DNA of 64,000 nucleotides from Podarcis liolepis (lineage: Eukaryota): assembly GCA_965112155.1 (NCBI GenBank), contig OZ218100.1. One strand, given 5' to 3'. The notes beneath the pieces are model-generated. The model did not search any database. It was not told where the DNA came from and saw nothing but the letters and a program-made list of their open reading frames with translations. Positions 14,194 through 64,000 of this stretch are shown here, piece after piece. The position numbers and the translations under genes were made by a program. Positions within the stretch are counted from its first letter, which is position 1. Each line of letters starts with the position of its first letter.

Positions 14194-14594
14194 CATGTAC
14201 ACCTGCATGATTTTTGGTAGCAGGATTATTTTAAGGTAGGGTGGGGAATCTCAAGCCCAGGAACTGAATGTTGGCCTCAGGACTCTCCCAAAGCCACATC
14301 CTCTGTCCCCAGGACACGCCTCTGCACTGCGCTCTTGAGAGCTTCTGCCTGGCTAGAATGTGCCAGTAAGCTGGTGACAATGCCCCTAGCTTGTGTCCAA
14401 GTTCATATGTGTAGAAGCTACTGGCTTTTGCGTGGCTGGAGTGCTCCTTCCACTTTTGCCTCTGGTTCCAGCCCCAACCACCGCCACCTAACCACAGCAA
14501 GGCTGGCCTTGAGAAAGTACAACCCCAGAGCTGGAAAGGAAGCTTCCCATACTGATCAGATAACATTGCCCGTTAGCAGCTTTTAAGCATTTTA

Positions 14595-15758: not shown

Positions 15759-15801
15759 ATGCACGTAACAGAAGGGCCCAGAACCGAGACTCCAGGAACA
15801 G
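15759..15801 (+). CDS. RGS22/RGSL1-like exon 1, coding part (MHVTEGPRTETPGT)
   Basis: aaaATGc start; CAG|GTGAGT phase-1 donor fits exon 2. A possible acceptor at 15690 leaves the true start uncertain. Confidence 0.55.
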
Positions 15802-18800
15802 GTGAGTATAATTTCTTCTCGATAGGGATGCTGGAGAAGTCAATCAAATGGAAATGGGAGCACAAATCACCACTATTGGCACATTCATTTGAGGTCAGGA
15901 ATGGAAATCATGTCCAGAAATTTATGTAAACCATTACATTTTTTTCTGCATTGTTTTTTATTTTTCCCTTCCATCGAAATGCATTGAAATTAATTGCACA
16001 ATTGATTGCTTTGGTTTTGGCCTAGATGAATAATGTAGGTTTTAGCAGAAACTGAACTGTAGCAGAAGAGAAAGAGTGCTGATTGTGATAAGCACAGGAC
16101 AGGGTGAAAATTGCTGCCTCCTTACATTCCTTACTGCTGAATAATGGTCTGATTCAGGGATAAGTGCATGAGTTGGAGGATGAGCCTTTTGAAATGAACT
16201 TCATCCTGGGGGGGATGGAGCTGGAATGAAGCTATAGCCATGTAATAGTTTCACAGAACGGCAAGCTTCCTTTTTGTGTGTGGCCATGTCATATATGTGC
16301 TTCTGCTCTGGCTTTTGCTCTTCCCAAAAGGGATGTCCCACTTGAAAACCATAGAGAGACATTCCAGGCAGCAGCAGTGAGTGGTTGCTAGGCAACCACA
16401 TTCTAGAGAACAGTTTAGGGATGGGCAATGTAGCCAAGAAGTGGAAAAAGAGATCTGAGTTTTTCAGCTGCCTGAGAGGAGCCTGTGTTTGGGGGTATGC
16501 AGTTTAGAAAGAGATGAAGAAGTTCCAAAAAGATGTAGGATGTGAACTTAGAGGTCATCCAGTGAAACCAATTAACTACAGGTGTGAGACGGACCAAGGG
16601 AAGTACTTCTTTACACAACCTATCATTAACATATGGAACTCATAGCCACAAGATGTGGTGATGGACCAGTGGTTTTGATGGCTTCAAAAAGAGAGGATAC
16701 ATTCACAAGGAAAGGTCTATCAGTATGAAGCTTCCATGTTCAGAGACAGTTAAGCTTTTCATATGGTCATTCAGAGATAAGGCTTGTGCGTCCAAAGGTA
16801 ACTTGATGAGCGTCTACTCTAAATCAAAGAGTCTAAGAGTGGAATGGAATGGCTGCAAGTTACTGAAGGTTGACTTTTAGACTCATTCAATTACTTATGT
16901 TTCTGTCTTCCTTTTCTGTTGTGATCCTTCTTTACATCTGGCTCCTTCCAACAAAACTCAAACTTTCCTCTCCCACCTGTTGCCTGTTGAAATGCAGGGA
17001 GAAAAAAGGGAAAGGTGCCACAGAAAAATTGAGGCCAAACTCAAGGAAAACATGCAGTTAAATACAATTATCAATCAAAATAATTTATTTCCATTTCTGC
17101 TTTACCATATGGTTAAAGATGCTTTGAAATTTAAGAGGAATATTTACCTTACTGTGTTTTTTTTTTTAAAAAAGAAATTTATTTGCATTTTCAAAAACGG
17201 GAACAGAGAGCATACCTTACTATGTACTAAATAGTCCCTGGATTGACCTTCATGTATTTTAAACTTTCATTTATAGCCCAACCCTCCCTGAAGCTCAGGC
17301 TGGCATGCATGATTTAATCCTCGCAATTATTATGTGAGGTAGGTTAACATAAGTAGTGATTGGCTGAAGGTCACCCAATGAGTTTCATGACTGGAAGTTT
17401 GAACCTGGGTCCTCCCAGTTTGATACTCTAACCATTACATCAGGGGGTTGCTATCATGTGCCATCCAGTACCTTCCCAGGTACCCTTGGGCATCCCCATT
17501 CAGCTGTAACAGTGTCTCCACGACATCTCCCCCAAGAGTCCCTGTCAAGGTTGACTAGAAGACTCTTGCTGGTTTTCAAATATTCTCAGGGACGGACTTT
17601 GGTAATCCTTCATAATATGGCACCCTGCATGAGGCCAAAATTTGGTGCCCCCAAATAGATCTTCTGAATTGTGGCTCTTCTCAATTTTGTGTCCCCCTCA
17701 GTTCGGTGCCCTGTCTGGGGGGCGGAACTGCCTGCACCACGCTAAATCCAGCGCTGCTATTCTGTTTGCTGTTACTCCACCCTTCGATATTTTCACTGCT
17801 ATGGAATGTAGATATTAGTTCTGCTTATCTCATGCATTGCTGTGACATGCTCTATGGGGAGCTGGCTTCAGGCAACAGGCCAATTGGCAGACCAACTCTG
17901 CATTACGAAAACCTCTGCAAATGTGACATGGTGGCTGGCAACATCAACCCTGCCTTGTGGGAATCCCTTCCAGATGACCTCAGTGGCTGGAGACAGACAG
18001 TCATGTCGTGTATCCATAGCAGTGACCAGAGAAAGAATGACTGCTGGGAGGAGTGCAGAAAGAGCAAACACCATGGTGCATCTGCAGCAGCCCAACCAGA
18101 CACCTACATCTTCCCCAGCTGCAACAAAACATGTCTCTCCTGTATCGGTCTCTACAGCCACAGCAGGCTCTGTAACCATCCAGCAATTTGACCCCCAAAG
18201 CCACACTCCTCCATTGTCTCCTGAAACAGATGGATACCAGCAGTGGCAACAAATGTTGTGGTGTTTTCTCACTATCTGGAACACTGTATTTTAAAGTAGG
18301 GTGTTGCTCTATCTTCACTTTCTGATTAAAGGTTTATACATACTGTTATAATGGTGTCCTTTCAAATGTTTCCTCTTCTTTTTGGAATCATAGAATTGTA
18401 GAGTTGGAACGGGCCCCCCAGGGTCATCTAGTCCAACGCCCTGCAATGCAGGAATCTCAACATGTGGTCCCTGCATTCAATTTGAAACCAGACCAGACCC
18501 TGCTTAGCTTTGCAAATGTGCTAGCAGTTTTATTCTGTTGCTTTTAAGTCTGCAAAGCCATATCTTGTGTGTAATATTGTGTGTGTGCAATATTAAATTA
18601 TTCAGACCGGTTTTGTATGCATCCCCCAAGATAGTGTTCACATTACATCTGAAGCACAAGATTAAATACACACAAATCTCACACACCCTGCCCAGCCTTC
18701 TTTATTACACACATGGATGGGGTTGTGATATATGGAAAGAAATAAAAAGCCATCCTCAAAACACACCAAAACTTAAATGAGCATTAAAAAATTACCTCAC

Positions 18801-21800
18801 AAGAATTGCAGGTATCCAAATCTTTCAAATCTGAAACCTGAAGAAAATACTGAGAGAGACAAGCCATTTCTCAATCTCAGCAGAATATCTTCCTCATTAC
18901 GTATACACTTTCCAGAGTGGCCATTTTAGTCTCTTACAGGAAAAAACAACTCATTTTTATTGCACCCGAAAGACTAACCAAACTATTAAGATATAACTTC
19001 AGGTGCATCTGATGAAGTGAATTGTAGTCTAGAAACATTTATGCCATAATTTGTTAAGGTGCCACAAGACTCTGTTATTACATGATTTACTTGTGACTAT
19101 GATATGATACCTCCAAAATGTAGTACTTCAGCATATTTTTTGTGGAGCCATTCTGTCTTAACTGAGATGTTCTGAGCTCTGGCTGCCATCAGCTCCTGTT
19201 AAAGTATCCATGAATGATTCCAGATGAGGCTTCCCTTATGCAAACCAATGATATCTTGCTCCTGGGTGTTGCAGAGGTCTGTGTAAGGCTTGTAGACCTC
19301 GGTGTCTTACATTGCTGCCTTGGTTTTTGATTTTGTTTCAGAGCACGAGCTTCTAGAGGAGCTGCTGACTTATGATGACCTCTTTCTGGAAACATTCAAT
19401 GCTTTTCTGGCTATGCCTGTGAGTAGAGGTCACATCTTTCCCTGTTATCTGAACTCTGGGTTTTGGCTGGGTTAGAAGGATACTTTCACAGTTGTAACAT
19501 GCTGTTCTTCTCAGAGAACAGTGCATTGGGGTTTGATTTTTTTTAATGTAAACAGCTGGTGGGTGGGGGATATTTGTGGGAAAGGGCTGCATGCAAAAGG
19601 TCCCAGGTTCAATCCCTGGTGTCTCCCAAGTGGGGATATGAAGTGTCTCTTCCTGAAATTCTAGAAAGCCACTGCTTAGTAGGTGTGGATAATACTGAGC
19701 TAGATGGACCAGTGGTTTGACTTGGTATAAAGAAGGTTTCTATAAGATCAGGACTGGGCAAGGAGAATTAATCCTTGCCCCACCTCACACTGTAACTCTG
19801 ATGAATATATATGCAAATGGAGATTTCATTCCCAGGGTTAATAATGGCTCCAGGAAGGAATTTTCATTGGGATCACAGTGGATGCGGGGAGAAGGGCAAA
19901 TAGCAGAGGTGGCCAGGATCCATTGGGACTGGTAGGTCAGAAAGCTGGGAGACCAACAGCAGGGGGAGCCAGAGCCCATGGAAGACAGAACCAAGTAATT
20001 CCATTTGTGTCCCCATCTTCCATTCCTGGCCTCTCACCTCCCATGACATATTTTAAAAAACATTTTATAAATGTGAGGCATGGCTGAAGATATGCATAAG
20101 CACATTTGCATTTTTTAAAACAAACAAACAGTTACTTGTTTGATGCAATGGAGTAAGGACAAGACGAAATGCTTGCTTAGTTGCCCTTCCAGCATTCCAC
20201 TTTCTGGCATATATATTTGTAGCACCAGTTGCAAAGCTAGGTTTTAATAGCTGCTGAAGGACCTGTGGTGAGTGACTGCTCAGAAATACTCTGTGCTCAT
20301 ATTCTTCTTAGAACTAAAAGTGACCTCTGCAGACACTGTTCTACCGGCCTTTCAGGTGATGTGTCACTTTCCTGCCTAAAGGGATGCTTTTTCTCTTTCA
20401 AGTAGGCTTTCCCTCTTAGACTGCATTACGACCGGCTGACAGGACGACTGCAGGAGCTGGATGGCTTCCTCTTGCCAATTGGGTCCAATTCCCTTTGCTA
20501 TGGAGCAACCGATACAGAGAGGGAAAGGGCCCTGAGCTGGTTAGCGCAGGAGCGCTTCCTCCCATTTCAAAGGTTGAGCACTGGATCTGTTTGCATTTTC
20601 CTATACAATGCTCTGCACTATTTCTTACCTTTCCGTTGACCTGTCACATTGCAGGTGTTTTCCATGCTTCAGATATGGGTTCAGGGTTTTGTTCCTGCTG
20701 CTGTGAATTCCTATGTGTCTATAACATGGTTGAAGTCATTTTAATCTTGCAAAGAGGGAAATGGACAGGAAACACGGAAGCCATTGAATGTCATGTAGTG
20801 TGTAATATGCCCATTCTACAGATCAGTGAGTCTCTGACATCCAGCAGTTTTATTTGTTTGGCCCAGTCATGATCACAGCTAGAACAACAGAACCAGTTCC
20901 TGTGCTTAATTTCATCCCATGTTATATTGGGCCCCTTAATTACTTTCAGAAGCGGCACTGAGCTCTGGGACATGACTCCTTCCATCCAGTATTGCATTAA
21001 TCGCAGGCAACCAAAGAGGATAATTTGAGCATGTAATTTTCCTTCCCTCATAGGTAACAACAGCAAAGAGACTAAGGAGCTTGAATAGATATTCTCATGC
21101 TGTGTCCAAGCAAATCTGTCCCAGGTTGCAGTCACGTGGGATGAAGAACCATTGCCTACCATGGACTTCAGAATAAGGGTGCATATGATTGAGATGCAAA
21201 TCAAGAAATAAACTACTTGAGCACCCACAAATGCAACCAAAGGCATTTCCCATGTTAGAAAACCTGCCAATACCTTGTGGTGCAGGGTTAGGGAACCTGT
21301 GGCCCTTCTGATTGTTGAACTCCAACTCCCATCAGTCCCAGCCAGCAGGGCTAAGGGTCAAGAATGATGGGAGCTGTAGTCCAGCAGCATCTAGAGATCC
21401 CCTCCAGTGCTAAAGATAGAACTAACCAGCCTAAAGCCCATGTTGCAATATAAGAACAAATTTACTGAAGAAGTGTGCATGCACACGAAAGCTCATACCA
21501 ATAACAAACTTAGTTGGTCTCTAAGGTGCTACTGGAAGGAATTTTTTTCATTTTGTTTTGACTACGGCAGACCAACACGGCTACCTATCTGTAAACAAAT
21601 TTTCTGTCACAGAAGTGTGTGCAAGTAGAGTTTCTGAAGGGTGTGTGTGTGTGTGTGTGAATCATGTTCCCCTTTTCCAATTTGTAAAAGTTAACAGTTT
21701 AACTGTGAATATGATGAATGTACCACCTAAAATAATTTTCTAAATGGTAAAGTGGGCTTAGAATAATGCTTTGCAGCCCTTCCTGTGGCCTGGTGCCCTG

Positions 21801-24800
21801 AGCTGTCGCTGTTTCTGAAGTGTTCATTTGCTGCCTGTTTCCTGCTAGGACTCTTTTTTACCTGGAGTATAAACTGGCAAAGCTGTTGCTGTGTCCTCTG
21901 GATGAGAAGTACCCAGAGAGTCGCTACGCAATTCGTGGGTTCAGTCGCCAGTCTGACAGCACTGCCATCTCCAGCATCCCCAGCCATTCATCAACAGAGC
22001 GGCAGCCCACTGGAGTCCCAAGCCATGTGCTGCTAAGACTTCCTAGCCAAACACGCAGTACTCCGGCCTGCCTAGGTGAGTCTCCCTCAGCTGCTGTCTT
22101 CTGCACCCTCAGGAGTGGATCTCCTCAGCCATATCTTGGTCCCTTTCCACTGCTGGAGAGATGCCTGTCAGTCTCTTCGCATGTTTAGCTCTCAGACTGG
22201 TTGGCTGGAAAGAAGACAAAACTATGGTGTGTGACTGCACTTGGAATACTGTGTATAGTTCTGGTTGCCTCACTTGAAAGGTATTTTAGAGATGGAAAAT
22301 GTGCAGAAAATGGTAATGATCAAGTACCACCTCCTTTGTCCAGCAATAGCAACCTTTTTACGCAGCTGCCATCTCCTAATAGCCATTGATAGATTTGTTG
22401 TCAGTGAATTTGTGGCTAGTTCTTTTTAAAGTAATCAAAAGTAAAATTATTTATGTTGCCTTGACCATGTCAAAAGGGAGTTTGGAAAATGACTTAGATG
22501 GGGCAGGATCCAAGCCTTTCTACTGTCCCATGAACCCATTGCACTTGCTTCCATTCTACACCTAGGTGGGGAGCAAGCCTCGCCATCCATCAGCTCATCT
22601 GTAAACATTTTCTTTCTGATCCCTCTAACCTTCTGTCTCCATGCTTTCCTGCAGGACATTTTGTAAGATCATCTGGCCAAACCTCCACTGAGATATCTTT
22701 GGAGTTCCCAGGTATCTTGAGTTTAGCTCTATCTCCAGCCACAGAACATCTGAGCAGGCTCCAGCTCCAGAGACTCCTGTCTGACTCCAGCGTACGAAGA
22801 GCAACTGGTAGGAACCCTGCAGCTAGGTTGGGGAAATTGGAGGTTGGGTAAGAGCTAGCTGGAAAAGGGTGCATTCGTTGCCCTGGCCCCTGGAAGGAAG
22901 TGCTTTCGAAGGTCAGCTATTTGTGATTTTGCTTCTGATATGCATCCTCTTACAGGAAGGCTCAGAAGTGGCTGGACCAATGCAGGTGAGCCGGTGGTAA
23001 CTCCAATTCATCTAAGCAGGGCTGCTCTCGCCTCCTCGCCTGATCAAGAATTCACTGAACTTCACATGGATGGGTAAGTCTGGCTGCTAAAAGTGCCATG
23101 ACGAGAATACTAAATTATTTCTAACCAAGTTAATGTAATGTTTTCCTGCCAGATGAAATGGCCTTGTGAAACCTGAAATCTGTTGTCCAATGTGTACAGC
23201 ACATCTCACTTTTCATGGTGACTATGAATTCAAGTTTTCCATGCTTGTGAGTTATCTAATGCAAAATGCTGTTGCCAGAATATTTACTGGATAAAGGTTA
23301 TCAGAACAGAATTACATCCATATTGGTTGATCTACAATGGTGGCCAGTCCATTACTGTGTCCACTTTAAGGCAATTGTTTTAAGCTTTAAAAACCTAAAA
23401 CCGCTTGGGACCTGAGTACTTTACAGACTGCTTTCTTCCATATGTTCCTCCCTGCATGCCTTGTTCATCTTATGAGAATATGATCCAGATTTCTTGGCTG
23501 CCTGAAGCACAGCAACACGGTGTTCTGCTTTATCAGTGGTGGCGCCCATTCTGTATATTGTACAGGCATGTTGTAATAGTATATTTCTTACATCAGACTA
23601 AATGAACTTTGATATCCCTTTGAACTATCTAATTCTGTTAATGCCCTAAGATTTGCCTGCAAAAAGCTGTCCCCATCAATTGTCTGGTTTTGACACACTG
23701 TTCCATCTGTTCCTTTCGAAGTTGTCGGAAGCCATTTTCAGGTTCTGGGAAGGTTTTGCAGTTTGACTTGAATGAGACAAGGAACTCCCAGGAAGGGGAA
23801 GGGGACACATTTATTTCGCCTTGCTTTGGAAGTGCCGCTCTGCAGCAGCTAAAAGAAGAGATCCTAGGGACTGTGAGTAATGTGGCATCCTGGTGAGAAA
23901 CTTGGCTTGGAGGCATTCTCTCTATCCAGTTCATTTTCCCCACTTCCTGACTTATATGGATCCATCTATATAGCATAGCTCAGTCGGTTAGAGGGTGATG
24001 CTGTTAAATGCCAAGGTTGCAGGTTCGATTCCCATAAGGGACAGTTGCATATTCCTTCATTGCAGGGGTGTGGATTATATGATCCTCAGGGTCCTTCCCA
24101 AGTCTCTGATTCTATGATCTTGTATTGCGATGGTGACTACCAAAGGCACAGGAGAAAAGGTGGTTGTCTCACTCTGTTCAATGATGATGTGAACTGCAGT
24201 GTTAACAACAGTGGCCCTATTAGGGCATTCGGTCTCCATGCATGTAGAACCCCCCCCCCACTAGGTTTAGATCAGGGGTCTGCAACCTTTAAGACAAAAA
24301 GAGCCACTTGGACCCGTTTCCGAAGAAAAACAACAACTGGGAGCCGCAAAACTATTGCGACATTTAAAGCAAGCGCGCCGCTGCCCTCCGATCTGACAGC
24401 GGGCAGGAAGGTGACGTTGGGACGGTGCGTGACTAACGCACGCACCGCCCCAATGCGACGTCACAGCCAGTACAGCGCCCGCCACAGTGGGGAGTGTTGG
24501 GGCGCACAATGTGCCTCCTCCCCTCGCTAGTATCCGCCCCGGAGCTGCGGCAAAGGTGTAAAAGAGCCGCATGCGGCTCCGGAGCCGCGGGTTGCAGACC
24601 CCTGGTTTAGACTGATTAAAGTTATAGATTGCTTCCCACTTAGAAAAGTCCCAACACAGTTTACAACCAAAATAGAAATGTAATAATAATAATAAATTGC
24701 ACAAACATGTTAAAGACATAGTAAAGAATACAGTGTCATGAAAGAATTAGTTCTCAAGGTAACCACCCAGAACATGACAAACAGTCAGTTGAAAGGAAAA

Positions 24801-25460
24801 CACTTTGCCCGATGCTGAAACAATGGCAAAGTTGGTGTCAGGTGGACCTCCCTGAGGAGAGCATTCCATAGACAGGCATTCCATACTACAGAAAAGACCC
24901 ATTCAGGGCTGTACTTGGCACGAGGGGCCTCCATGAGTAAATTGGGTAAAAATGGCATGTTAGTAAGGGCAGGGCTTCGAAGCACCATACCCCCCACTTC
25001 TCCCTGCATGTAACTTTCCCCATTTTTCCCTCTTGTGCAACGTAGCCATAGAATGGGCCCTCAGATGTATAGCTGTGGGTAGGCGGCATTCCCTTCTCCT
25101 CTCAGGTGCTTACAGCTCTACCAGCTATTTCCCCCCTCCCTCCCTCCCTCTTGTATTGCAGAGGGCTGGCATGGACAGCTTCAGGGAGTTCCTCCATGGC
25201 ACACTGGGAATCCACCTCCTTGACTTCTGGATTGACTGTGAGGATATTATGGAGTACACCACACGCCTGGAGAAGGCCAGAACTGCATCCCAGGAGATCC
25301 AGCTGTTCTTTTTCAGCGCTCTTCGGTATGGATGCAAATGATTTTTTCAAACTAGATGTGGAGGAGAATGGCTATACAGATGTGACATGGGAGATCCCTG
25401 ACTGGGTCTTTTATAAAGCACTTGTTGCAGTGCTGTAGCTACAGGGAGCAAGGGCCTAGC

Positions 25461-25511
<51 letters not shown>

Positions 25512-26479
25512 TACCCTGGGTGAAGCCGCCAGAGGGGTGCCATTGAGGCTTCCAGCCTGTGTGTGTACACAAATGCACACGGGGGTGTGTGTGAGCCAAA
25601 TTGGGTCTTTGACCTGGATGAAATAAAGCCTAGTTATGCCCCTGCTTGTTAGCTGGCAGAAGATGCTTAACCCTTTCCTTCATGCTGTTTACCAAAACTG
25701 TATCACCTTCAAAGCTGCTATTAGCTCCACAGCATGGATAAAAATGCGGGCACCTATGAGATGACTGTGGGGCTAATATCGATGCTGGTGCCAGTGTGGT
25801 GTAGTGGTTAAGAGCGATAGACACGTAATCTGGGGAACCCACAGCCTCTCAGCCCCACTCACCTCACAGAGTGTTTGTTGTGGGGGAGGAAGGGAAAGGA
25901 GAATGTTAGCCGCTTTGAGACTCCTTAAAGGGAGTGAAAGGCGGGATATCAAATCCAAACTCTTCTTCTCTTCTTCTTCTTTGCACCACACGGTCACCAC
26001 TTCAGTGTTTCTTAAACATCTGGGTGGTATCACACTAGAAGAGAGCCCCATGCAGGCTGACGCCATGATGTGTTAGCAACAAATTGGCTCTATGAGTTAC
26101 GTGGCCCACCCACTTGCCCCACCAAATCTAAGTTTCTGGCTCGGCCAGCTTGCACTCAGCTCAGACTTTTCCTGCTCTAGCTTTTCCCTCCTCTTTTGTT
26201 GGCAGGAGCATTCAAGCCAAGTACAAGCTGATGCTTCCTCCTGCCTGTCGGGTGAGTAATGCTGCTTGGGGGGCAGGTGCCCCTGCGTTTTTCCAGGTCG
26301 CAGCTTTAAGAGAACCTTTGCTCTCCCCCGGGGAAACTGACAAATCTGCCAACTGCGTAGCTCAGCTGCTAGCCTGCATGGGGGTGGAAGCCCAGGGACA
26401 AATGTCTACCTCCTACCACCTCCTCTGTCAGGAAAATTCTTTGTTTCCTGAAGCTGTAGCCTGAATCTCATGATGGGTG

Positions 26480-26516
<37 letters not shown>

Positions 26517-29500
26517 GTATCAGAGCAAGCTTCTGTTGCCTCTTTCTATCCTCTCTCTGTTGGCCTTTTTACCATTGTTTCCAACTTTGCATTGTGGGTG
26601 CTACCAGACATGGACTATTTTTGCAGCATTCAGTAACGGCTGTTCTGCTTTAAAAATAAAACCTCATTGCAGATTGATTCTGCAGCACCCCACTGTCTCC
26701 ACACCTTCCCATTGTGGGTGGACCTATACCAAAACTGCAATCACCAGCTCTTTGTGTCTCGTTCAAATGACAGTCTTGTCCTTTTGTGTTCTTTGACAAA
26801 GACATCTGATTTGTTCCTCCTCCCTGGCTATGATAATCTCTGCCCATCACTTAAGCCTTTTTGGACCATCTTAAGACAAGTCAGCAGAACATGAGAGTTA
26901 TCAACAGTCTTTTGCGAAGTCTTAAAAAGGCATCGCCTTAGAGCACCCACATGGGTAGTTCTATGTATAGAACTCAGGAAATCTATAAGAATGCGTGAAT
27001 AATGAGAACAACTTATTTAAGCCTTACCACCTGTGAAAGAGCTTAGGCCCCATTTATATGAAGGGTATCTGGTGTGATTGTTGTTGCTTCTGTGGTAGTT
27101 TCCATTCCAATTGGCATATTCCACACCCTTTGAAGTACATCCCTTGCTTAACAAGCTGTTAAAACAGGGCTGGGAAATTTGTGGTCCTCCTGATATTGGT
27201 GAATCTAATTCCCATCAGCCCAAGCCAGTATGGCCAATGGGCAGGGATGATGGGAGTTGTAGTCCAATAACACCTTGGGAGCTGTCACACAGGTGACACA
27301 TCCAGTGCCAGATTTACTTATAAGCTAAAGGAGCTATAGCTTAGGGCCCCACTCTCTTGGAGGACCCCCCCCCCCCAAAAAAATGAAGGAAAAAACAAAT
27401 GGATGTACATTTCCAAAATATAAGATAAAAAAAAAACCTACATACAGCAACAATGTTTTTTGTTGTGCAGGCTCCTATTTGTTGTGTGCAAATGGCTTTA
27501 GAAACCTATTAGGTCCATAAATTACCATATAGCATATATTCAACACAAAAAACAGTGACAATTTGTTGTTGACTAGGACAGCTGGACATATAAAGGGCCC
27601 CATTACCTTCAGTAGCTTAGGCCTCATCAAACCTAAATCTGGCCCTAGACACATCCTTGGATTAGAGGAACTTTGCCTGGACCCAGCCAGTGTGAGAGCA
27701 ATGAAGGAGGTGGTAGCAACTGCAAATGTCTAGAAGAAACATGACAAGTGGTTATTTAATTTCCATTTTATACAAATTGCATAATAACATTACTGCTTTC
27801 CTGACCCTCTGCTGGCAGCAGCAACGTGATGAAACTTCAAGCCCTGAGGAGACTGCTTTTGCTGCCTTGAGCAGAAACCAATACGATGCTTTGAGGCGCC
27901 TGCGCTCCTACTGGGTCCCCCGGTTTCTCATTCACCACCAGAGGACCAGGCAGCGCAGGTTTGTGTGTTGGAAGATCATGAAATGAACGGGAGTTTGGGG
28001 TGTGCGGAATGGGCTATTTTTTTCAGCTGCACCGGGCAGTAAAATGATATTTTTCTGTGTTATGTGCTAAGTTGAATAGGATCCAAAATGCAGCAGTCTG
28101 ATTGGTCCTAGAACAATAGGATTCAGAATGCAGCAGTCTGATTGGCCCTAGAACAATAGCATCCAGAATTCAGCAGTCTGATTGGTCCACAGGAGCCACC
28201 CAATCCAGCTCCAGGTGAAAGTGAATCCGCAACCTGATTGGCCTACAGGTGAATCCCGGAATAAGCCAATCACGTGGGGCCCTTTGTGTAAATAATGTAT
28301 TTAAAGCAGACATTCTGGGGAACTTCCATTCCTCTTCACCACAATGAGCTGAATAAAGAGCATGAAATCCACTCTTGACTCTGAGTATATTTCACTCTGG
28401 CAGCAAAATTCAATAACCAGAGAGGCCTTTGACAGGAAGATGAGGCAACGTCTTTTTCGCTTAGAGAAAAGGCGAGTAAGGGGTCACATGATAGAAGTTT
28501 ATAACATTAGGAACAGCATGGAGCAAGTGGATAGAGAAAGGTTTTTCTCCTTCCCTTCTAAACACTAGAACTTGTGGGCATAAAATGAAGCTGAATGTTG
28601 GAAGATTCAGGGCAGATTAAAAAAAGTACTTCTTCATGCAGTTAAACCATGGAACCACTCCCACAGGGGGCAATGATGGCCACCAACTCAGATGGCTTTG
28701 GGATTAGACAAATTCATGGAGGATAATGGCTACTGATGGCTACTAGCCATGATGGTTATGCTCTGCCTAAATAGTCAGAGGCAGAAATGCTTCTGAATGC
28801 CAGAATTCGGAGGAGGAGATAGTGATGTTGTGCTCAGGTCCTGTTTGCAGGCACCTGGTTGGCCGCTGTGAGAACAGGATGCTGAAATAGATGGGCCATT
28901 GGCCTGATCCAGCAAGCTCTTCTTATGTTCTTATGAGAGATCTAGGGCAGGTAAACGGGAGCTTGGATTATTGCACAGAATCACTGAGTTGGAAGGGAGG
29001 CCAAAGGGGGATCTAATCCAGTCTCCGACCAATGCATGGAACACTAGAGCAGGGATGGGGAGCCTCAGGCCTCAGGGCCAAATGCAACCCTCCATGCTTC
29101 TCTGCCTGGCACTTGGGACTCTCCCAATGCCACACCTCTCACCAGCCTTGCTTTGCACCTTCCTTGGGTGCTCTTGCCAGGCTGCAATGTGCCCTTGAAT
29201 TTGGCAATGCCTCTTGCTTGCCTAGTTGGAGGCCAGAGAGGGATGTGTGAAGAAACTGGCCTTCTGTACAGAAGGTAAAATTCACATTCGTTGTTACACA
29301 TTAACAGCTGCTACATTGAACATTTAAAAGTGATCTTCATGTGGTGACTATAATGTGCAAATTGGCTCCTCAGGGCGCTTGCATTCTCTGTTGTCTTCCT
29401 CAAGCTGAGGAGTTTGCTGATGTCCTATCGTCTCCCTCTCTCTCTCAAATGGGGAAAGTGGAAGGCTGTTTGTTGGCTCAAAATAATGCCAGTCTATTTA

Positions 29501-30457
29501 TGTTAACACTTCTGAATGCTTAGGCTCAGTTCAGGCTTCCCAGTCGACAAGGAGCTCTTCCCAAGTACTGACTTCCTGTCCTCTCTTAACATGGCGGCAT
29601 TGCTTCCTGTTGTGGATGACCAAAGGGACACAATGAGAAATGAAGACTCGAGAATGGTGTGCGTACCAACCCTTTAAAATCACAGAATGCTTGGTTCTGT
29701 TTTATTTCTGACCTATACTGTTATCCTGTGATCATAAATAACTCTCTTGATGTAGTGGATTTCTCCCTGCTGCAACCCTCCTCCCTCCCCCAGCAGTTTG
29801 ATCATCCTATGGTCTGTAATTGACTAAGTTAAGGTGACTTGGTATTAGGGACTTGTGGGAAACTCGCATGAGAATTTGGGGTGAGGTGGGGGAGGGCTGG
29901 CAGCCAGGTCACTTTAAAGCAGGGGGTGGGGAAGCTGTGCCCCCAGATGTTGTTGGACCACAACTCCCATCATTCCTGACCATTGGCCATGCCAGCTGGG
30001 ATTGTTGGGAGCTAGGATTCAATCACATCTGGATAGCTGCAGATTCCCAGTACATGCTTCAAGGCTTTCACTGGTAGTTGTGGTGACAAGGTATGTATTT
30101 AGGGTAACTCAGCTTTATCAAATAAGCTGAGTTTCAGAATGGCCTTGGAGAATCTGGACACAGTTCTAGCCCTTGTTCCACTGCATCTAGCAGTGAGGCC
30201 CTGAAGGAACATTCGACTCTTTGCTACGGCTGTGATATCTGTCCATCTTTGCTTCAGCAATTTAGGGGGAACAGAAAAAGTCGAATTGGTCCAAGCAAGC
30301 AGTTGGACCTCGCAGAAGACCCCTCTGAAACACTGACCACCACCCGATTTCTCCAGGTACTGATGTGTGACATGGGGGATGGTGATGGCTTTCTTCACTA
30401 CTTGACTCGGTGAGTTATGCTTTTCTTAGCAGCCTGAACATTTACTGTTCTTTGTCG

Positions 30458-30502
<45 letters not shown>

Positions 30503-31008
30503 GCTTCCTATTTGTGACCCAAGGGAGGATATTCACTTGTGGGGAATGTTTTTGCAGCCTTGTGCAGACCAGCTGCCTCCTTATATTCCTGGTTTTATTG
30601 GCGGCATTTTTCCAGTTCTCTGTTAAGCTAAGGGAGGCAGCTTTCCTGGTTTACCCTTCAGGTTTGAGGATCCTCAGAAGACCCATAACCTGTTGCTGTG
30701 GAGGAAGCTGAAGCTCTATGAAGCTGCATGGGCGCAGGAGGCAAGCCAGTCAGAAATTCACCATATTGCTTGGCAGATTTTTCAGACATTTATGGCGTCT
30801 TATGCAGGATGCAACACAGGTGAGCTATCCATGAATGTGGAGCAGCATTTGTTACCTCTGCTCTGTCATATGCCTCTGAGATGGCAGGAACCTAGGTCTG
30901 TTAGGAGTGAGAACCCTTTGATCTGTTGAGGGCCACATTCCTTCAGGGTTTATCTCTTGGGGAACACATGCCAGGGATGGGAAAGACCACAGTCAAAATT
31001 GCACCTCT

Positions 31009-31074
<66 letters not shown>

Positions 31075-34000
31075 ACAGGAATTTGAGAGGGGTGTTCCAG
31101 AGAGAGAAGTAGCAGGTCTGCAGCATACACACCAAATCCTTAAAGCAAAACACCTTTTCCCCAAATCCTGGGAATTGTAGTTTGTTAAGGGTGCTGGGAA
31201 TTGTAGTACTGCATGGGGAAACTTGGTGTCTAAGTAATAGCTCGTCCAAAGAACTGTCATAGCAAGCCTGCACTTTGAAGATGGGGGTCTTAAGCCAACC
31301 TTGTGTTCTGCTTCTCCTTTCCTTGCAGGGCTTAGCGCCCTTATACTGGAATACATCCAGCATCTTGAGAGGATGCTTTCCTTTGGCAGTGAAGACCTGA
31401 AGCCTTCCACTTTTGAACCAGTGGTTCCCTATGTTCTGGCTGTTCTGGATGAGATGTGGCTCCATTATCTTCGCCATGAAGTCACAACTTTCCTTGAGTG
31501 AGTCCCAAGCTGTCCTACACTATTCCACCATGCAAGATGGTGTAGTCTGAGTTTAAACCCAGTTGTTGCTTTATTAACAAAATGGGTTTTGAGAGTCAAT
31601 AAAGAAAACTTTAAATATCTTTTTCCCAGTCAGCCAGTGCTCTTTGCAAATAATTTTTAAGCTCTTTGATTGTAAAAGGGGGGAAATTGCCATCTAATTT
31701 TCTTTTTTGCAGATACTGTGTACCGGAATCTCATGACGATGACCAAAGTATCATGAGCGAAGGCGATAGAGTAAAACAGGAGGGAAATGAGAGGTAATAC
31801 AGAATGCTGTGGAAACAAAGGGGCAACTTAGATGCTGAATTCTATTTAGTAGAGGCCTGGATTTACGAAGTTGCTGTTCTGTTAGCCTCTGTGCCCTTAC
31901 AATATCCTAATTCATAATCTAATGAATGAAAAATAATATCTGGGAAGAAAAAGGTACTGAAATCTACTCAGAGTCGAGAGTGGATTTCATGCTCTTTATT
32001 CAGCTCATAGTGGTGAGGAGGGAATGAAAATCCCCTCCAAGTATCTGCTTTATATACATTATTTACACAATGGGCTGCACGTGATTGGCTAATTCCGGAA
32101 TTCTCCTGTAGGCCAATCAGGTTGTGGATTCACTTCTATCTGGAGCTGGATTGGGTGGCTCCTGCCGACCAATCAGACTGCTGCATTCTGAATCCTATTG
32201 TTCTAGGACCAATCAGACTGCTGCAGTTTGGATCCTATTCAACTCAGTACATAACAGGTACCTAAAGTTTTTTGGGTACCAGCAAATGCCTGGCTTACTC
32301 CTGGGTCTGCTGATAACCTTTCCATTATGTGGAACTTAAAGTGTAGCAGAAGCTATTAACGGGGCGGTTTTCAACACAATCTAAAAGTATTTCGCTTATT
32401 GTGAATTCATTTTCAGTTTATATATTTGAGAGAGAGATTCTAGCCCTCATAGGTGTGAAGGAAAGTTTGAAAATACATGTGCAAAATCTGCAAATGGAGC
32501 TTGGTCAAGGCTAATGAAATGAAAGAGCAGGGTTTGCTTTCTCTGCCAAGCTCTTATCTCCCTGTCCAGATTGCTTTCTCAGGCCATCCCCACCCATCTT
32601 TTGACCTTTCCCACCTCACTCAGTGCCCAGATGAAACCCAAACTACTGCAGTCCCTTTACATTTTGCAAAAATAAAATAAAATGCATCATTCCTTGGTGA
32701 TTTATTCTTAAAATGGAATTTGCATTTCATTGATACACCTCTGGAATATAGTTCTTCCCCACCAAGTCCTCTGAGTGATAAATATTTATGGGCTAATACT
32801 TTGCGAGCAGGGAGGCTTCATATCGAACGGTAACGTGAAGCTGTGATTCCCGAGCCCTGCAATGATCCTCATTTGTGTGGCCCTTCCTGCAGGATAAAGA
32901 AACAGAGGCAGAATGCCTGGCCACACCATGACCAAAAAGGCAGAGGGAGACACAGGAAAAGAATCAGGAAGAAGGCAGCCATGACGTCTCACTGCACAGG
33001 AAGTGCTGCTGAGCAAGAGACAACAGGAGAGAGGTCAACAAGCCCTCAAGATGCGCCCACCCCTCAAAATGCACCTGACCTGCTCAGCAACGCTGTTGTT
33101 TTGAATGTTTATAGGAAGGTGGCTCATAAAATTCAGGATGTGGCGCTGCAAAGGATTCTGGGGCTGCTCCAGGAAGTGGAGGCTTGCCAGGATGCTGCCC
33201 AGAGTGAAAAGCGCCTGGGTTGTGTGGCGAGGCTTCTAGAGATCTGGGACAAGCCAGGGCCTGTGGCATCAAGTGCCTGCTTCCCAGAAGAGCTGAAGAT
33301 GAGGTTAAAGAAGGAGGTAGCCGGGGGAGGGATAAGTGACTCCAGCTGGAAGGAAATCCGGCTCTCTTTGCGTTCCTTTCTGGCCCCTGCTTTTGAGCAG
33401 TTCTGGGATGAAGTGAGTGAGGGGCTGAGGAAGCATGGGATGGAGTCCTCCGAGATCCCAGAGGAGCGCTGGGGGAAGCTGGAACCGTTCCTACACTCCA
33501 TTGCCGCCAAAGTGGCACTCAGGCGTTTAAAGAGCCAGAAAGCTCGCGATGGATCAGCAGCCACAGCTCAACCTGTTAAGGGGGACAAGACCTCTTTCTG
33601 GCAGTCCCTACGGAAAGCCGCAGAGGGCTGGCCCACCATCGAGATTCTCCATTTCCTCAAACACCTCCAGGGGCATGGCCCCCCTGTGCTGGAGAGCGGC
33701 CTCCATTTTCTACTGGAGGTGCAGAAGTTCAAGAACGCCCACCACGCCTGGCCTGACATGGCTCTTCTGAAGAAGAAAGTCCATGTGATACGTGACTGTT
33801 TTCTCAACTCTCAGATTGAGCCCCGGCTGCAGGTACGAGACCTTTCCTGGGTAAGGGGCAGCAAATGTCACAGGGATACATCCTGCGCAAGGGGCAAAGG
33901 CTCCCTATTTTATACCTCCAAACAAGAGGCGTGGCAAGGGAGCAACACCTGCTGTATTCTTTTCTTCCTTGAGCCTGCTCCTAAAGGAGTAAATTTGGGA

Positions 34001-36668
34001 AGGGAGGTGCATTCAAAGAGCTGTTTGACAGTGGACCAGACTTCCTGGGGAGCAGTGGTTTTTATTACATATTTTGTGTTTTTATCTTGCATTTTTATGC
34101 CGTGAACTGCCCTGAGATCTACCGATGAAGGACAGTATACAAATTTAAATAAATAAATAAATAAAAGCTAGCAGCTTTGGCAAACCCGTTGTTGGTGTTG
34201 CCTGCAGATCAGTAATTCCAAAATAATTAAATGCTACTATCAGTCTCCTGCCAGCAGAATTAATCTCAGCTTCTCACAGTCCCTGACTCATTGCATCTGG
34301 GGAATGCCTTGCCTGAGCGCAGCTGCTGCCTCTCAGCATTCGGGCAGAGAAACCAGATTATACCCAAACAGAGGCCAGAGTAGTACGAAAATGGTGTGAG
34401 AGAGAGCACACACGCTTGACCGCAAATTAGTGCTTCTGCTTTACTCTGCTGTTGGAAGAGCCGTGGGCAGGGAGGATGTTTCCTGTGGGTTATCTTGGCA
34501 TGCTCCCAAGTCCAGGATGCTGAATGTGTGCTTCCTGCCCTCCAGGTTGCAGTGGATACTCGGAGGCTGGGGAGAGCTATTCGGGCAGCTGAACAGGCCG
34601 TCCAGGAAGAGATTCCAGTGCCGCCTCCAAGCTTGTTTGATGAGTTGAAGGATTCAGTCTTTAATATTCTGCTGCCGTACTGGGCTGCTTTCCAAAAACA
34701 CTGGCTCAAGCAGTCCCCTGCGAGTGCACAAAAAGCCCCAGGTGGGTTTATTTTCACTTGGAAAACAGAAGAAAGAAAATGGCAAATGTCCATGCAGAGA
34801 TCCCGCCATTGGTGTGTGCGCGTGCACATTAACATAGGCAATCCCTGTGGCAAAACATGTTTTGCGCTCCTGGTTGATGTGTGAGGAAAGTTAAGTGCAA
34901 TTGTGTAGTACTAATGCAAAATATACATAAAGTCCTAGGTTCAGTCTCTCCGCTGGAAGGATCTCACAAATGGGAATGCTGGAAAAGACCTCCAACAGAG
35001 GCAGCAGATGGCTGGCTACTGCCAGGGTAAATGGGCCTGGTCTCAGTAGCCCGCTAGTCTAATTCAATCTTAGAAAAATGCTTCGGCCTTCTGGCAGAAA
35101 GTCCACTTTCAAGACAGTAAAAGTGCAAGTCAGCTCTGGCCAATCTCTGACTTTGTCTTTGTCTTAGGGCATAGCGTGTTTCATGGAATAGGGAGTAAAG
35201 GTTGCACAGTAAAAGCTCTCCAGAGTACCGTAACACCCGTGTGTTTTACCAGTACATCACACTGAGAGAAGAAACAGCTTTGATAGGTCTTCCCTCTCTG
35301 CAGTGTTGAGAAATCAGCTCCTCCTCCAGAAGAGGCGGGCCATGCTTGAAAAGGTGCAAGGGCCACCAACGCAGCTTCTTCAACTGCCACCACTCCAGCG
35401 GCCCAGGGAAGTCCAGCAAAGCAGGGGTCAGGAGGGCTTTACTTACACTTTCTCCATCAGCAAAGGCCTCACGCTACAGGTCAGTATGCGGCATTGCACT
35501 CTTTACTGTTTCCTAGGATTCAGTGGCTTAGAATACTGGGAGAAGAGTGAAAGTACAAACCAATCTGGCAAGAGTGTTGGCTTTTCCCTGCTAAGTGATA
35601 CAGGCTGATATTCCTGCAAGCTGCTTCTCATCTAAGAAAGTAGTTCCTCCTCTGCAGCAACTCAGAGCATCGCAAGACAAAGCTATCACAAAATTTGGTA
35701 CAGCCAAGAATTGTGATAACAGCTCCTGGGTGTTGCACAAACAACCCTAACCAGCACGTTCTGTTGCTGTAGCTGAGAGTTATGCTGCCAACATAAGTCC
35801 CCCCCCCCCTTTTACACCCAGATGACTATGCCTGGGAGCCTGTTGCAAATGCAGTCTCTGGTTCGTTTCCACACTCAAAGGGTGCATACACATGCCAACA
35901 ATAGATATAATAATGGTAGTATTTGTTGCCTTTGGAATTAAATAGAATGTAACAGAATAGCCAAAAATGTAAACAGTTCATGGCAGGCTTTATATGTGTT
36001 TGGCAGAATGGCATCAAAAGCAAGAAATTACAACAAGTAGTCTTGGAAGCAATGTATAGGACCACTTGCTGGAAAGCTTATCAGTGAATATGTCACTATT
36101 CAGGGAAGATTTTTAGTCCCATGAGCCTACACTAGAGAGCAGGAGCAGATGAATTGAGTTGATCATCTTTCAGAATGCCTACCCTCTGTTGCTATTTTTC
36201 ATGGCCTCATAACCTGGTCTTTTTTACAACATTTTTACATATGCAATAGTAGTAATCTTTAATGGGTTGTAGTAGTTCTGCAGAAAATACCATGATCTGT
36301 AAATGACCCAACACTCAGCAAGTGTCTGAAAAATGTGGGATTCCTTGTTGTAGAGCAGGGATTATAGCAACATTTGCAGGGCCAAGGGTTACCCATCCAA
36401 GTTGCAGGGAGTTGAATTTTGGTGGTCTAAAAGTTTGTATGTGTCAACTGGGTATTGCCCTGCAGTTGTTGCAGAAACATTGATGGACTCCAGTGTCACT
36501 TTAGGCTAGAAAATGATAATACGCTAATACAGTAACTGCTTTTCTCCTTAGGGCATGAGCAAAGAACTCATGAGTCACAGCAAGACTAGCTCTTCTGGGA
36601 TTCAAAACAGAAAGAGGTCAACTGGATTTCAGTTTCCCTCACTTCCCAATGTGCCGGTGCTCACTTGA
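15759..36668 (+). CDS. Uncharacterised RGS22/RGSL1-family multi-RGS-domain protein, 19 coding exons, ~1135 aa (gene span)
   Basis: 19 GT-AG exons with compatible phases sum to 3408 nt with no internal stop. Motifs LLTYDDLFLETFNAFLAMP, WLAQERFLPF..FYLEYKLAKLL, FREFLHGTLGIHLLDFWIDCE, ALRRLRSYWVPRFLIH and LHFLLEVQKFK resemble RGS22/RGSL1 (from memory). Confidence 0.85.
16384..16396. promoter_or_regulatory. RFX X-box (GTTGCTAGGCAAC), intron 1 of the RGS-like gene
   Basis: Near-perfect palindromic match to GTTGCYNGGCAAC. Confidence 0.5.
17840..18250 (+). mobile_element. RTE-clade LINE 3' fragment (non-BovB)
   Basis: LYGELASGNRPIGRPTL..CNKTCLSCIGLYSHSRLC. Confidence 0.85.
18915..19075. mobile_element. 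Penelope-like element terminal relic
   Basis: ctgatgaag..gaaa..taaggtgccacaagactc with inverted flank. Confidence 0.6.
19342..19418 (+). CDS. RGS-like exon 2 (EHELLEELLTYDDLFLETFNAFLAMP)
   Basis: ttttgtttcag acceptor, GTGAGT donor; conserved RGS22/RGSL1 N-terminal motif. Confidence 0.9.
19585..19745 (+). mobile_element. Squam2-like SINE
   Basis: ggtcccaggttcaatccctgg B-box and CR1-type tail. Confidence 0.7.
20406..20572 (+). CDS. RGS-like exon 3 (AFPLRLHYDRL...ALSWLAQERFLPFQR)
   Basis: Pyrimidine tract plus aagtag acceptor, AG|gttgag donor, phase 0-2. Confidence 0.85.
21465..21593 (+). mobile_element. Penelope-like element terminus with minimal hammerhead ribozyme core
   Basis: CTGAAGA-A-GTGTG-CATG-CACAC-GAAA-GCTC then taaggtgctactgg..caacacggctacc. 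Confidence 0.7.
21849..22075 (+). CDS. RGS-like exon 4 (TLFYLEYKLAKLLLCP...PACL)
   Basis: cctgctag acceptor, GTGAGT donor, phase 2-1; YxEYxLAKL motif. Confidence 0.88.
22655..22807 (+). CDS. RGS-like exon 5 (Ser-rich linker)
   Basis: tttcctgcag acceptor, G|gtagga donor, open frame, phase 1-1. Confidence 0.7.
22956..23073 (+). CDS. RGS-like exon 6
   Basis: cctcttacag acceptor, GG|gtaagt donor (alternative donor at 22985). Confidence 0.65.
23722..23872 (+). CDS. RGS-like exon 7 (...FGSAALQQLKEEILGT)
   Basis: cctttcgaag acceptor (alternative 23742), GTGAGT phase-0 donor. Confidence 0.75.
23972..24120 (+). mobile_element. tRNA-derived SINE with CR1 3' tail
   Basis: tagctcagtcggttagag..ggttcgattccc head; gattctatgat tail. 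Confidence 0.8.
24273..24604. mobile_element. hAT-type MITE
   Basis: TIR CAGGGGTCTGCAACC, TSD GTTTAGAT/GTTTAGAC, CpG-rich. Confidence 0.9.
25162..25325 (+). CDS. RGS-like exon 8 (RAGMDSFREFLHGTLGIHLLDFWIDCEDI...), RGS-like domain 1
   Basis: gtattgcag acceptor, CG|gtatgg donor; RGS F..FL...L.FW..CE signature. Confidence 0.92.
25461..25510. repeat. (ATT)n microsatellite
   Basis: Direct observation. Confidence 0.95.
25790..25980 (+). mobile_element. Squam3 SINE, internally deleted
   Basis: gccagtgtggtgtagtggttaagagc head, L2-type tail, (TTC)n; near-identical to 61736-62027. Confidence 0.85.
26206..26251 (+). CDS. RGS-like exon 9 (SIQAKYKLMLPPACR)
   Basis: ttttgttggcag acceptor, GTGAGT donor, phase 2-0. 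Confidence 0.8.
27303..27647. mobile_element. hAT-type non-autonomous element
   Basis: TIR CAGTGCCAGATTTA/TAGGGCCAGATTTA, perfect TSD GACACATC. Confidence 0.9.
27819..27958 (+). CDS. RGS-like exon 10 (...QYDALRRLRSYWVPRFLIHH)
   Basis: CAGCAG tandem acceptor, AG|gtttgt donor; RGS C-terminal helix motif. Confidence 0.9.
28058..28394 (+). mobile_element. Solo LTR (Gypsy-like)
   Basis: TG...CA ends, ATTGG repeats, TATA-like, AATAAA, TSD TTCTG/CTCTG. Confidence 0.85.
28440..28935 (+). mobile_element. CR1 LINE 3' fragment
   Basis: [19 protein letters not shown]2 end; cttatgttcttatg tail. Confidence 0.85.
29524..29656 (+). CDS. RGS-like exon 11
   Basis: gcttag acceptor, open frame LSSGFPVDKELF...EDSRM; donor ambiguous (29656 or 29658). 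Confidence 0.65.
30258..30409 (+). CDS. RGS-like exon 12 (...FLQVLMCDMGDGDGFLHYLT)
   Basis: ctttgcttcag acceptor (alternative 30266), CG|gtgagt donor. Confidence 0.8.
30662..30819 (+). CDS. RGS-like exon 13 (NLLLWRKLKLY...IAWQIFQTFM), RGS-like domain 2
   Basis: cccttcag acceptor, CAG|gtgagc donor, phase 2-1. Confidence 0.88.
31004..31077. repeat. (CT)n(CA)n microsatellite
   Basis: Direct observation. Confidence 0.95.
31329..31497 (+). CDS. RGS-like exon 14 (...PSTFEPVVPYVLAVLDEMWLHYL...)
   Basis: ccttgcag acceptor, GA|gtgagt donor, phase 1-2. Confidence 0.88.
31713..31793 (+). CDS. RGS-like exon 15 (acidic linker)
   Basis: tcttttttgcag acceptor, AG|gtaata donor, phase 2-2. Confidence 0.8.
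31958..32256 (-). mobile_element. Solo LTR, same family as 28058-28394, inverted
   Basis: TG...CA ends, perfect 5-bp TSD GGTAC. Confidence 0.9.
32893..33832 (+). CDS. RGS-like exon 16 (940 nt; further RGS-like regions)
   Basis: Inside the 420-aa ORF 32843-34105; cttcctgcag acceptor, CAG|gtacga donor. Confidence 0.92.
34546..34741 (+). CDS. RGS-like exon 17 (...PSLFDELKDSVFNILLPYWAAF...)
   Basis: ccctccag acceptor, G|gtgggt donor; RGS terminal helices. Confidence 0.9.
35304..35479 (+). CDS. RGS-like exon 18 (...LQLPPLQ...YTFSISKGLTLQ)
   Basis: ctctctgcag acceptor, CAG|gtcagt donor, phase 1-0. Confidence 0.85.
36552..36668 (+). CDS. RGS-like terminal exon 19 (GMSKEL...FPSLPNVPVLT*)
   Basis: ttttctccttag acceptor, TGA 36666-36668, AATAAA at 36937 and 37184. 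Confidence 0.75.
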   Translation, partial: GMSKELMSHSKTSSSGIQNRKRSTGFQFPSLPNVPVLT

Positions 36669-63369: not shown

Positions 63370-64000
63370 CTGGCAATAGACCAGTCAGTAACCGGGGGGG
63401 GGGGGAGAGACAGATATAAGATAGAAGCAAAAGGCTTGATTATTCACCTAAAGCTATGGATGGGAAAAACCCCAGACAGTAAAGGAGATATCATAATTTG
63501 GAAATACGGTACTAGGGAAATGAATGAGAGGGGTAGCAGAAGCATTACCAGAATGCTGCAGCAGAGGATAGAAAGAGGATCAAACAGACTATGAAAGTGA
63601 GGCGTTACAAAAGTTCTTATATGGACTACATTATGAAGGGTGCTGGAAAGGCAGGTCAAATTACTCTAGAGCATTGGCAAGGAACCTCTGCCCTGCTCTT
63701 GAATGTTCCAGAACTCTTCTGAAATCAGCAGGGTGAAAGGTGCTACATTCAGAAGGAAGAATAACTCTGAATGCACTCCCAATTATTCCTTTGCAGCCAC
63801 AGCTTTTCTTCAGTTTAAGGCTGCAAAGGAAAAACCTTTGGAGCCACAGCTTGAACGCAATGGGTCCTCCACTTAACATGTTATTTACTTGCACAATCAT
63901 GACTGTAGGCGCACGGCTGAAAATAAATAGAGAGTGGGGGACACCTGCCATGGGGAGAGCTTTTCAAGTCTTCTAACTTGCTTAACAGCCTCAGGGAAGG

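Follow-up and report, generated by a model that had tools for sequence, protein, structure and literature searches.

An intact, unnamed lizard gene of an ancient family related to, and separate from, the radial-spoke protein RGS22

The stretch of DNA analysed here, called the window, comprises 64,000 nucleotides of the lizard Podarcis liolepis (contig OZ218100.1) and is vertebrate DNA without assembly gaps. On its plus strand, at positions 15759-36668, lies an intact protein-coding gene that is the orthologue of LOC114594545 in Podarcis muralis and of LOC118081765 in Zootoca vivipara. The gene is not RGS22 but a member of a second family of similar proteins, sister to that of RGS22, and its product may be a non-catalytic scaffold of the axoneme, the likeliest of the functions considered. 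Taken as a whole, this is the best explanation of the evidence, with a probability of roughly 0.6, and its parts differ in strength. The gene model, the orthology and the history of two families are established with near certainty. An axonemal role of the lizard protein, drawn by analogy from its distant paralogue RGS22, is possible and stands somewhat below an even chance. Although the gene is already predicted in RefSeq, it has no name. The literature searched contained no study of the gene or of an 'RGS22-like' family, nor any earlier mention of an ancient family apart from RGS22 that is retained from invertebrates to reptiles and was not found in mammals. The unnamed LOC family is referred to below as family A, a name coined here, and true RGS22 as family B.

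A mechanical list of open reading frames (ORFs) on the plus strand shows scattered coding-looking pieces between 19 and 36 kb and one large open stretch at 32.8-34.1 kb. An earlier note on this DNA had joined 19 exons into a stop-free frame of 1135 amino acids (aa) and regarded the gene as intact. The exon chain was rebuilt independently by local tblastn of lacertid orthologues against the window, with splice sites chosen for reading frame and best fit to the orthologue. The orthologues are labelled P0142 (P. muralis), P0143 (Zootoca) and P0148 (Zootoca isoform X1, 1139 aa). Nineteen exons were recovered with compatible phases, and all 18 introns are bounded by GT...AG, the acceptors being preceded by 60-90% pyrimidines. 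The exon lengths total 3402 nt and run from an ATG through 1133 codons to a TGA, and a script check of the joined frame found no internal stops. Exon 11 possesses tandem AG acceptors at 29524 and 29530, which are 6 nt apart and both in frame; use of 29524 adds two residues and restores the 1135 aa of the earlier model. The same pair of acceptors explains why models of different lacertids have either 1133 or 1135 aa. In an exon-by-exon translation, 1103 of the 1121 whole codons (98.4%) are identical to P. muralis XP_077781778.1, the RefSeq 'uncharacterized protein LOC114594545'. Identity to the P. lilfordi protein is 96.8%, and to Zootoca vivipara LOC118081765 isoform X3 (1135 aa) it is 94.8%. 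The intactness claimed previously is therefore borne out by the introns, the absence of stops and the match to the P. muralis model.

The first four exons encode the N-terminal part of the protein. Exon 1 (15759..15801) contains the start ATG and 14 codons plus 1 nt; it was located by tblastn with residues 1-14 of P0142 and P0143, ends at the donor CAG/GTGAGT and agrees with P. muralis at 13 of 14 residues. Exon 2 (19342..19418; 25/25 aa as in P0142) carries the N-terminal motif LLTYDDLFLETFNAFLAMP. The N-terminal domain continues in exon 3 (20406..20572; 55/55 aa identical), which was placed by tblastn and splice sites, as were exons 6, 7, 12 and 15. Exon 4 (21849..22075; 73/75 aa identical) encodes the motif FYLEYKLAKLLL and a conserved RGFSRQS stretch. 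The linker occupies exon 5 (22655..22807), which is predicted to be disordered (the orthologue model has a predicted local distance difference test score, pLDDT, of less than 50 at residues 113-300), and exon 6 (22956..23073), and it extends into exon 7 (23722..23872), where RGS-like domain 1 begins.

The first half of domain 1 falls in exon 8 (25162..25325), an ORF piece of which gives a partial PF00615 match with E 0.002. The domain continues in exon 9 (26206..26251; 15/15 aa identical) and ends in exon 10 (27819..27958) with the conserved QYDALRRLRSYWVPRFLIH, which forms invariant columns in two alignments. Exon 11, with the tandem acceptor, extends over 29530..29656. Domain 2 begins in exon 12 (30258..30409) and continues through exon 13 (30662..30819), with a weak PF00615 match on an ORF piece (E 0.2), and exon 14 (31329..31497; 55/55 aa identical); exon 15 follows at 31713..31793. 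The largest exon, exon 16 (32893..33832), whose splice sites were read straight from the sequence, has 940 nt and 313 whole codons, encodes a basic linker, domain 3 and the first half of domain 4, and matches P0142 at 309 of 313 residues. The second half of domain 4, including LLPYWAAF, is in exon 17 (34546..34741; 65/65 aa identical), and the C-terminal YTFSISKG motif is in exon 18 (35304..35479). Exon 19 (36552..36668; 36/38 aa identical) ends in the TGA stop.

Read-through of the exon 18 donor leaves the frame open to 35605 (35304-35608) and yields an alternative C-terminus that matches residues 1037-1139 of Zootoca isoform X1 (P0148) at 93%. This is probably an alternative last exon or a retained-intron isoform that is conserved among lacertids. 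The introns also contain microsatellites at 25456-25520, 26470-26520, 30440-30510 and 31000-31080, among them an AT-rich trinucleotide run, (TG)n runs and a (CT)n(CA)n compound repeat.

The range of family A was determined in searches that used single window exons or ORF pieces and the near-identical orthologues P0142 and P0143 in place of the joined window protein. The 313 codons of exon 16 (32894-33832) were scored with HMMER in an exhaustive scan of 1.84 billion representative proteins, which returned 48 matches. The vertebrate matches came, in rank order, from Anolis, a snake, a turtle, an alligator, the Komodo dragon, the ostrich, a newt, frogs, a caecilian, the coelacanth, lungfish, bichir and lamprey (E 3e-21). 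They were followed by invertebrate matches down to 1e-8, from a hemichordate, echinoderms, molluscs, an annelid, a nemertean, a flatworm and a sponge fragment. The only matches from cartilaginous fishes and teleosts, at E ~1e-5, were genuine RGS22. Two word-index searches added about 60 further full-length members, including Xenopus laevis LOC108716562, and the vertebrate proteins of the family measure 1000-1165 aa. As had been anticipated, annotation of the gene in lacertids and most other species goes no further than 'uncharacterized protein LOC...'; nearly all relatives carry such names, and a few were automatically named 'RGS22' or 'RGS22-like'.

No mammal, teleost, cartilaginous fish or neognath bird was present among the family A matches of the exon 16 scan and the two word searches, all of which covered predicted proteomes. 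The earlier note had proposed a paralogue of RGS22 kept in reptiles and lost or moved in the human lineage. The absence in that lineage agrees with these results, in that no mammalian protein was among the relatives, although no search for mammalian remnants was made. The restriction to reptiles does not hold: orthologues run from lamprey to ostrich and squamates and are found in invertebrates as well, so that the origin of the family is older than the vertebrates. The lack of family A from the mammals, teleosts and neognath birds searched may explain why the gene has remained unstudied.

RGS22 itself was represented by the bovine chain 9fqr_Ha (1257 aa) from the 96-nm axonemal repeat of sperm (PDB 9fqr). 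Against this reference, an elephant shark fragment (P0043) scores 484 bits over 476 aa and killifish RGS22 scores 435 bits. The amphioxus protein reaches 72 bits, and Zootoca P0143 reaches 49.7 bits, confined to about 100 aa of the last RGS-like domain. A word search with killifish RGS22 listed at least 120 teleost matches. The gnathostome RGS22 orthologues thus form a tight group that excludes the lizard gene. A search seeded with the green turtle orthologue also recovered lungfish RGS22 (P0312) and, from the bivalves Dreissena, Mercenaria, Mactra and Mya, a second set of proteins some 1500 aa long, whose scores against the turtle query are only about 110 bits.

When all sequences were compared with one another by phmmer, the matrix separated into two blocks. 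The family A block contains the lizard, turtle, bichir, lamprey, amphioxus, sea urchin, scallop, Lingula and Owenia proteins, the lungfish LOC protein and the clam proteins P0088 (Mactra) and P0089 (Mya). Within it, a vertebrate and an invertebrate protein match each other at 300-390 bits, and two invertebrate proteins at 650-1460 bits. Lungfish, teleost and shark RGS22 make up the family B block along with the second bivalve set, and scores there are 360-860 bits. Across the two families, scores are 40-130 bits. Both families occur in the same species, with one gene each, in Mactra antiquata (P0088/P0310), Mya arenaria (P0089/P0311) and Protopterus annectens (P0020/P0312), and in both clams the A and B genes sit on contigs that differ in length. 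Among invertebrates, true RGS22 orthologues were recovered from bivalves only, as these proteins of about 1500 aa, and most invertebrate entries labelled 'RGS22' or 'RGS22-like', amphioxus included, belong to family A.

The same division is found in a maximum-likelihood (ML) tree of 36 rows and 993 columns (LG+C20+F+G4 with posterior mean site frequencies, PMSF). A long branch with 100% support in the Shimodaira-Hasegawa-like approximate likelihood ratio test (SH-aLRT) separates A from B. The bivalve B proteins are sister to vertebrate RGS22, and the vertebrate members of family A form a clade with 99% support and with lamprey at its base. An earlier tree contains the same vertebrate clade, there with 100% support, and places window exon 16 beside P. 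muralis inside it; this position, together with the 98.4% exon-by-exon identity, places the window gene in family A. In the approximately unbiased (AU) test, the best tree constrained to a single clade of all vertebrate sequences was rejected (delta lnL 404, p ~1e-7).

Two simpler relationships to RGS22 are ruled out by these results. A 1:1 orthology is incompatible with 49.7 bits against 435-484 bits, with the ML tree and with the AU test; the earlier note had also set the gene apart from RGS22, and it does lie on the other side of the 100% SH-aLRT branch. A vertebrate-only duplicate of RGS22 is excluded by the AU test and by the invertebrate members of both families. Because both A and B have invertebrate members, and given the tree and the AU test, the split between the families is placed, on sequence evidence, before the protostome-deuterostome divergence. 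The sponge fragment scores 105-130 bits against family A and 32-66 bits against family B; it leans to family A and hints at an even older origin of the split.

The earlier note called the gene a third member of the RGS22/RGSL1 family, a label under which RGSL1 would be a relative distinct from it. A different identity for the gene would be RGSL1 itself. Under this explanation family A is the RGSL1 family, the lizard gene is a non-mammalian RGSL1 orthologue, and the mammalian and avian RGSL1 diverged and moved to the RGS16-RGS8 cluster, so that a known gene under a missing name, rather than a separate family member, would have been found. Human RGSL1, which we take to be about 1076 aa long, is near the vertebrate family A proteins (1050-1165 aa) in length, and RGSL1 presumably has N-terminal motifs in common with the lizard gene, according to the earlier note. 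Testis genes can also evolve very fast. However, the exon 16 scan was sensitive enough to reach lamprey, invertebrates and even family B, yet nothing mammalian was among its matches. The chicken and goose annotations include a gene named RGSL1, but no neognath protein is among the family A matches, in which the ostrich is present. In addition, NCBI names for family A genes are 'uncharacterized' or 'RGS22-like' and never RGSL1. RGSL1 was absent from the matches of the exon 16 scan, from the matches listed by the word searches and from those in the PDB and the ESM Atlas, while the literature yielded only gene lists. On this indirect evidence, an RGSL1 identity is unlikely.

As a member of a family separate from RGS22, the lizard gene nevertheless encodes a protein whose architecture is that of RGS22. 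The family A profile aligns collinearly with bovine RGS22 over the N-terminal motifs and RGS-like domains 1, 2 and, most strongly, 4. The RGS22 motifs DDF..DYFNEFLSLP and ERLP.FL....YFEYRLAKL correspond to LLTYDDLFLETFNAFLAMP in exon 2 and FYLEYKLAKLLL in exon 4, so that the N-terminal motifs quoted in the earlier note are present and have aligned counterparts in the bovine protein. The Pfam RGS profile PF00615 is matched by the orthologues P0142 (47.5 bits; domain 1, residues 307-408) and P0143 (52.3 bits), against a gathering threshold of 23.9; window exon 8 alone, which holds part of this domain, scores 19 bits. The P. muralis protein was modelled with AlphaFold from a family alignment of 32 sequences, and the model has confidently folded blocks at 15-110, 299-431, 493-645, 718-880 and 887-1053, with disordered linkers between them. 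In Foldseek, the best PDB matches of the model are 9fqr_Ou (E 7e-9) and 9fqr_Ha (E 1.5e-3); the latter was named RGS22 by the PDB search, and 9fqr_Ou is only read as RGS22. Classical RGS domains come next, with template modelling (TM) scores of 0.6-0.68, and in the ESM Atlas RGS22 clusters are the nearest. The alignment, the AlphaFold blocks and the Foldseek matches all agree with the architecture of an RGS22-like superfamily that includes A and B, an N-terminal domain followed by four collinear RGS-homology domains. The protein of about 1133 aa is thus built like RGS22: a small, conserved domain at the N-terminus is followed by a long linker, predicted to be disordered, and by four helical bundles of degenerate RGS homology.

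Within the linker (residues 113-300, window exons 4-7) several motifs are near-invariant from molluscs to lizards, namely RGYSRQS (RGFSRQS in exon 4), S..S and R.PSR..S.P. They look like conserved docking or phosphorylation sites.

The function of RGS22 has been described in two mammals. In bovine sperm it lies in the head and neck of radial spokes 1 and 2, where it contacts AK8, DNAJB13 and PPIL6; it also touches the spoke-tethered TRiC and links radial spoke 2 to radial spoke 3 via EFCAB5 (PMC11779644). Mouse RGS22 has four RGS domains without G-alpha-contact residues, requires AK8 to reach cilia and, in immunoprecipitation followed by mass spectrometry (IP-MS), pulls down spoke proteins and no G proteins (PMC13443885). 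Its loss results in deformed radial spoke 1, uncoupled ciliary beating, hydrocephalus and poor sperm motility (PMC13443885). The lizard protein may, as a paralogue, be a scaffold without catalytic activity that is docked on the axoneme in motile cilia and in the flagella of sperm. By homology with RGS22, it would occupy a radial-spoke-type position on the axoneme in place of activating G-alpha GTPases. Its axonemal location, its tissue of expression and its lack of activity as a GTPase-activating protein (GAP) are what we infer from this analogy.

Conceivably, the protein is no axonemal scaffold but regulates G-protein signalling as a functional GAP for G-alpha subunits, in sperm or sensory cells for instance. 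Such an activity would fit the score of RGS-like domain 1, which at 47.5-52 bits is above the Pfam gathering score, and the good fold matches to classical G-alpha-bound RGS domains. Set against this, the degeneracy of domains 2-4 in the lizard protein keeps them, taken on their own, below Pfam significance. Moreover, RGS22, the closest characterised relative, is a structural spoke subunit that lacks the G-alpha-contact residues in all four domains and pulls down no G proteins. A catalytic role is accordingly improbable. The weakest alternative, which reads the exon chain as a pseudogene, as an ORF that is in decay or arose by chance, or as an artefact of annotation, is close to refuted by the absence of stops from 1133 codons (against 46 and 63 in the other two frames of the same chain), by the GT-AG boundaries of every intron, by the 98.4% and 94.8% identity to the sister-species and Zootoca models, and by full-length orthologues in more than 50 species, back to invertebrates.

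Several points weigh against an axonemal scaffold of a separate family. Identity between family A and RGS22 is only about 12-25%, and a shared radial-spoke location is an extrapolation. The AlphaFold model has a mean pLDDT of 60 and a predicted TM score (pTM) of 0.34, so that the individual domains alone are trustworthy. Searches of the PDB found no family A chain in axoneme structures. The apparent loss of the gene in mammals, teleosts and most birds shows that it is dispensable for 9+2 motility as such, and these absences themselves rest on predicted proteomes and not on genomes. In addition, the group used in the AU test was named after the tree had been seen, and family B is on a long branch.

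The surroundings of the gene were also surveyed. An alanyl-tRNA synthetase gene lies tail to tail with the RGS-like gene on the minus strand, from about 52 to beyond 63 kb. Part of it is contained in 52105..63443, where five exon-sized ORFs match PF01411 (tRNA-synt_2c), the core of class II alanyl-tRNA synthetases, collinearly. Reverse-transcriptase fragments occur between the two genes. The open stretches attributed to retrotransposons are located at 38282-39646 on the minus strand (455 aa, no Pfam match), at 47829-48899 on the plus strand (Pfam RVT_1 match) and at 14577-15092 on the plus strand, where the sequence resembles the tail of ORF2 of a long interspersed nuclear element (LINE). A regular-expression scan of the 64-kb window found no leucine-rich-repeat cluster, and the leucine-rich-repeat part of a TCTE1-like gene is therefore not within these 64 kb. 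The region within 1.2 kb of exon 1 is CpG-poor and has no strict RFX X-box. About 100 nt upstream of the start codon, GTTGCCACCAAC at 15655-15666 matches the X-box consensus (GTNRCC N0-3 RGYAAC) with one mismatch. It could be a weak lead for ciliary-gene regulation and was not used as evidence.

The recognition of RGS22 as a structural radial-spoke subunit specific to metazoans is as recent as 2025-2026, and the 2026 paper presents RGS22 as a single metazoan-wide protein without mention of a paralogue (PMC13443885). A second, equally ancient family of the same architecture changes how the evolution of this subunit is read, since the invertebrate genes called 'RGS22' are mostly orthologues of the unnamed family A and not of RGS22. 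A tentative suggestion, at distinctly less than even odds, is that animals ancestrally had two RGS22-type axonemal scaffolds, of which family A, the less diverged, was kept in Xenopus, lamprey, sea urchin, amphioxus and molluscs and lost in mammals, teleosts and most birds. If so, family A would be missing from every cilium parts list based on mammals, the 'metazoan RGS22' of recent work would conflate two families, and an additional subunit, so far unstudied, would be present in the radial spokes of non-mammals or elsewhere on their axonemes. Family A is a candidate axonemal component that is invisible to mammal-centred proteomics and cryo-electron microscopy. No experimental study of its invertebrate proteins was found in the literature searched. 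The hypothesis is testable, because the family is present in tractable systems such as the epidermal multiciliated cells of Xenopus and the sperm of sea urchin or lamprey. For annotation, the family provides a common identity for dozens of 'uncharacterized LOC' entries and of entries mislabelled 'RGS22' or 'RGS22-like'.

Among known systems, RGS22 is the one that the lizard protein most resembles. Both have the same collinear layout, with the DD-F-(x3)-FN-FL-LP and ERLP...EY-LAKL motifs, a long linker and four degenerate bundles of which the last is best conserved, and RGS22 is both the best PDB fold match of the lizard protein and its nearest ESM Atlas cluster. In contrast, the two belong to different, anciently separated orthogroups, the lizard protein is shorter (about 1133 aa against about 1260), and its family was not found in mammals. 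RGSL1 differs in being annotated in chicken, where no family A protein was found. The classical RGS proteins (RGS1, RGS4, RGS8 and RGS16) share the nine-helix RGS fold with the lizard protein (TM 0.6-0.68), and its domain 1 is significant for PF00615. The lizard protein, however, is about 1100 aa long with four tandem degenerate copies, and identity to the classical domains is 12-20%. The closest counterparts outside the vertebrates are the invertebrate proteins named 'RGS22-like' or 'uncharacterized LOC', such as amphioxus LOC118417227, sea urchin LOC575237, scallop LOC117323122 and those of Lingula and Owenia, all of which are family A. They are longer than the lizard protein (1250-1490 aa) and far less diverged from each other, but they score 300-390 bits against the vertebrate members over the full length, have invariant residues in common with them and lie on the same side of the A/B split.

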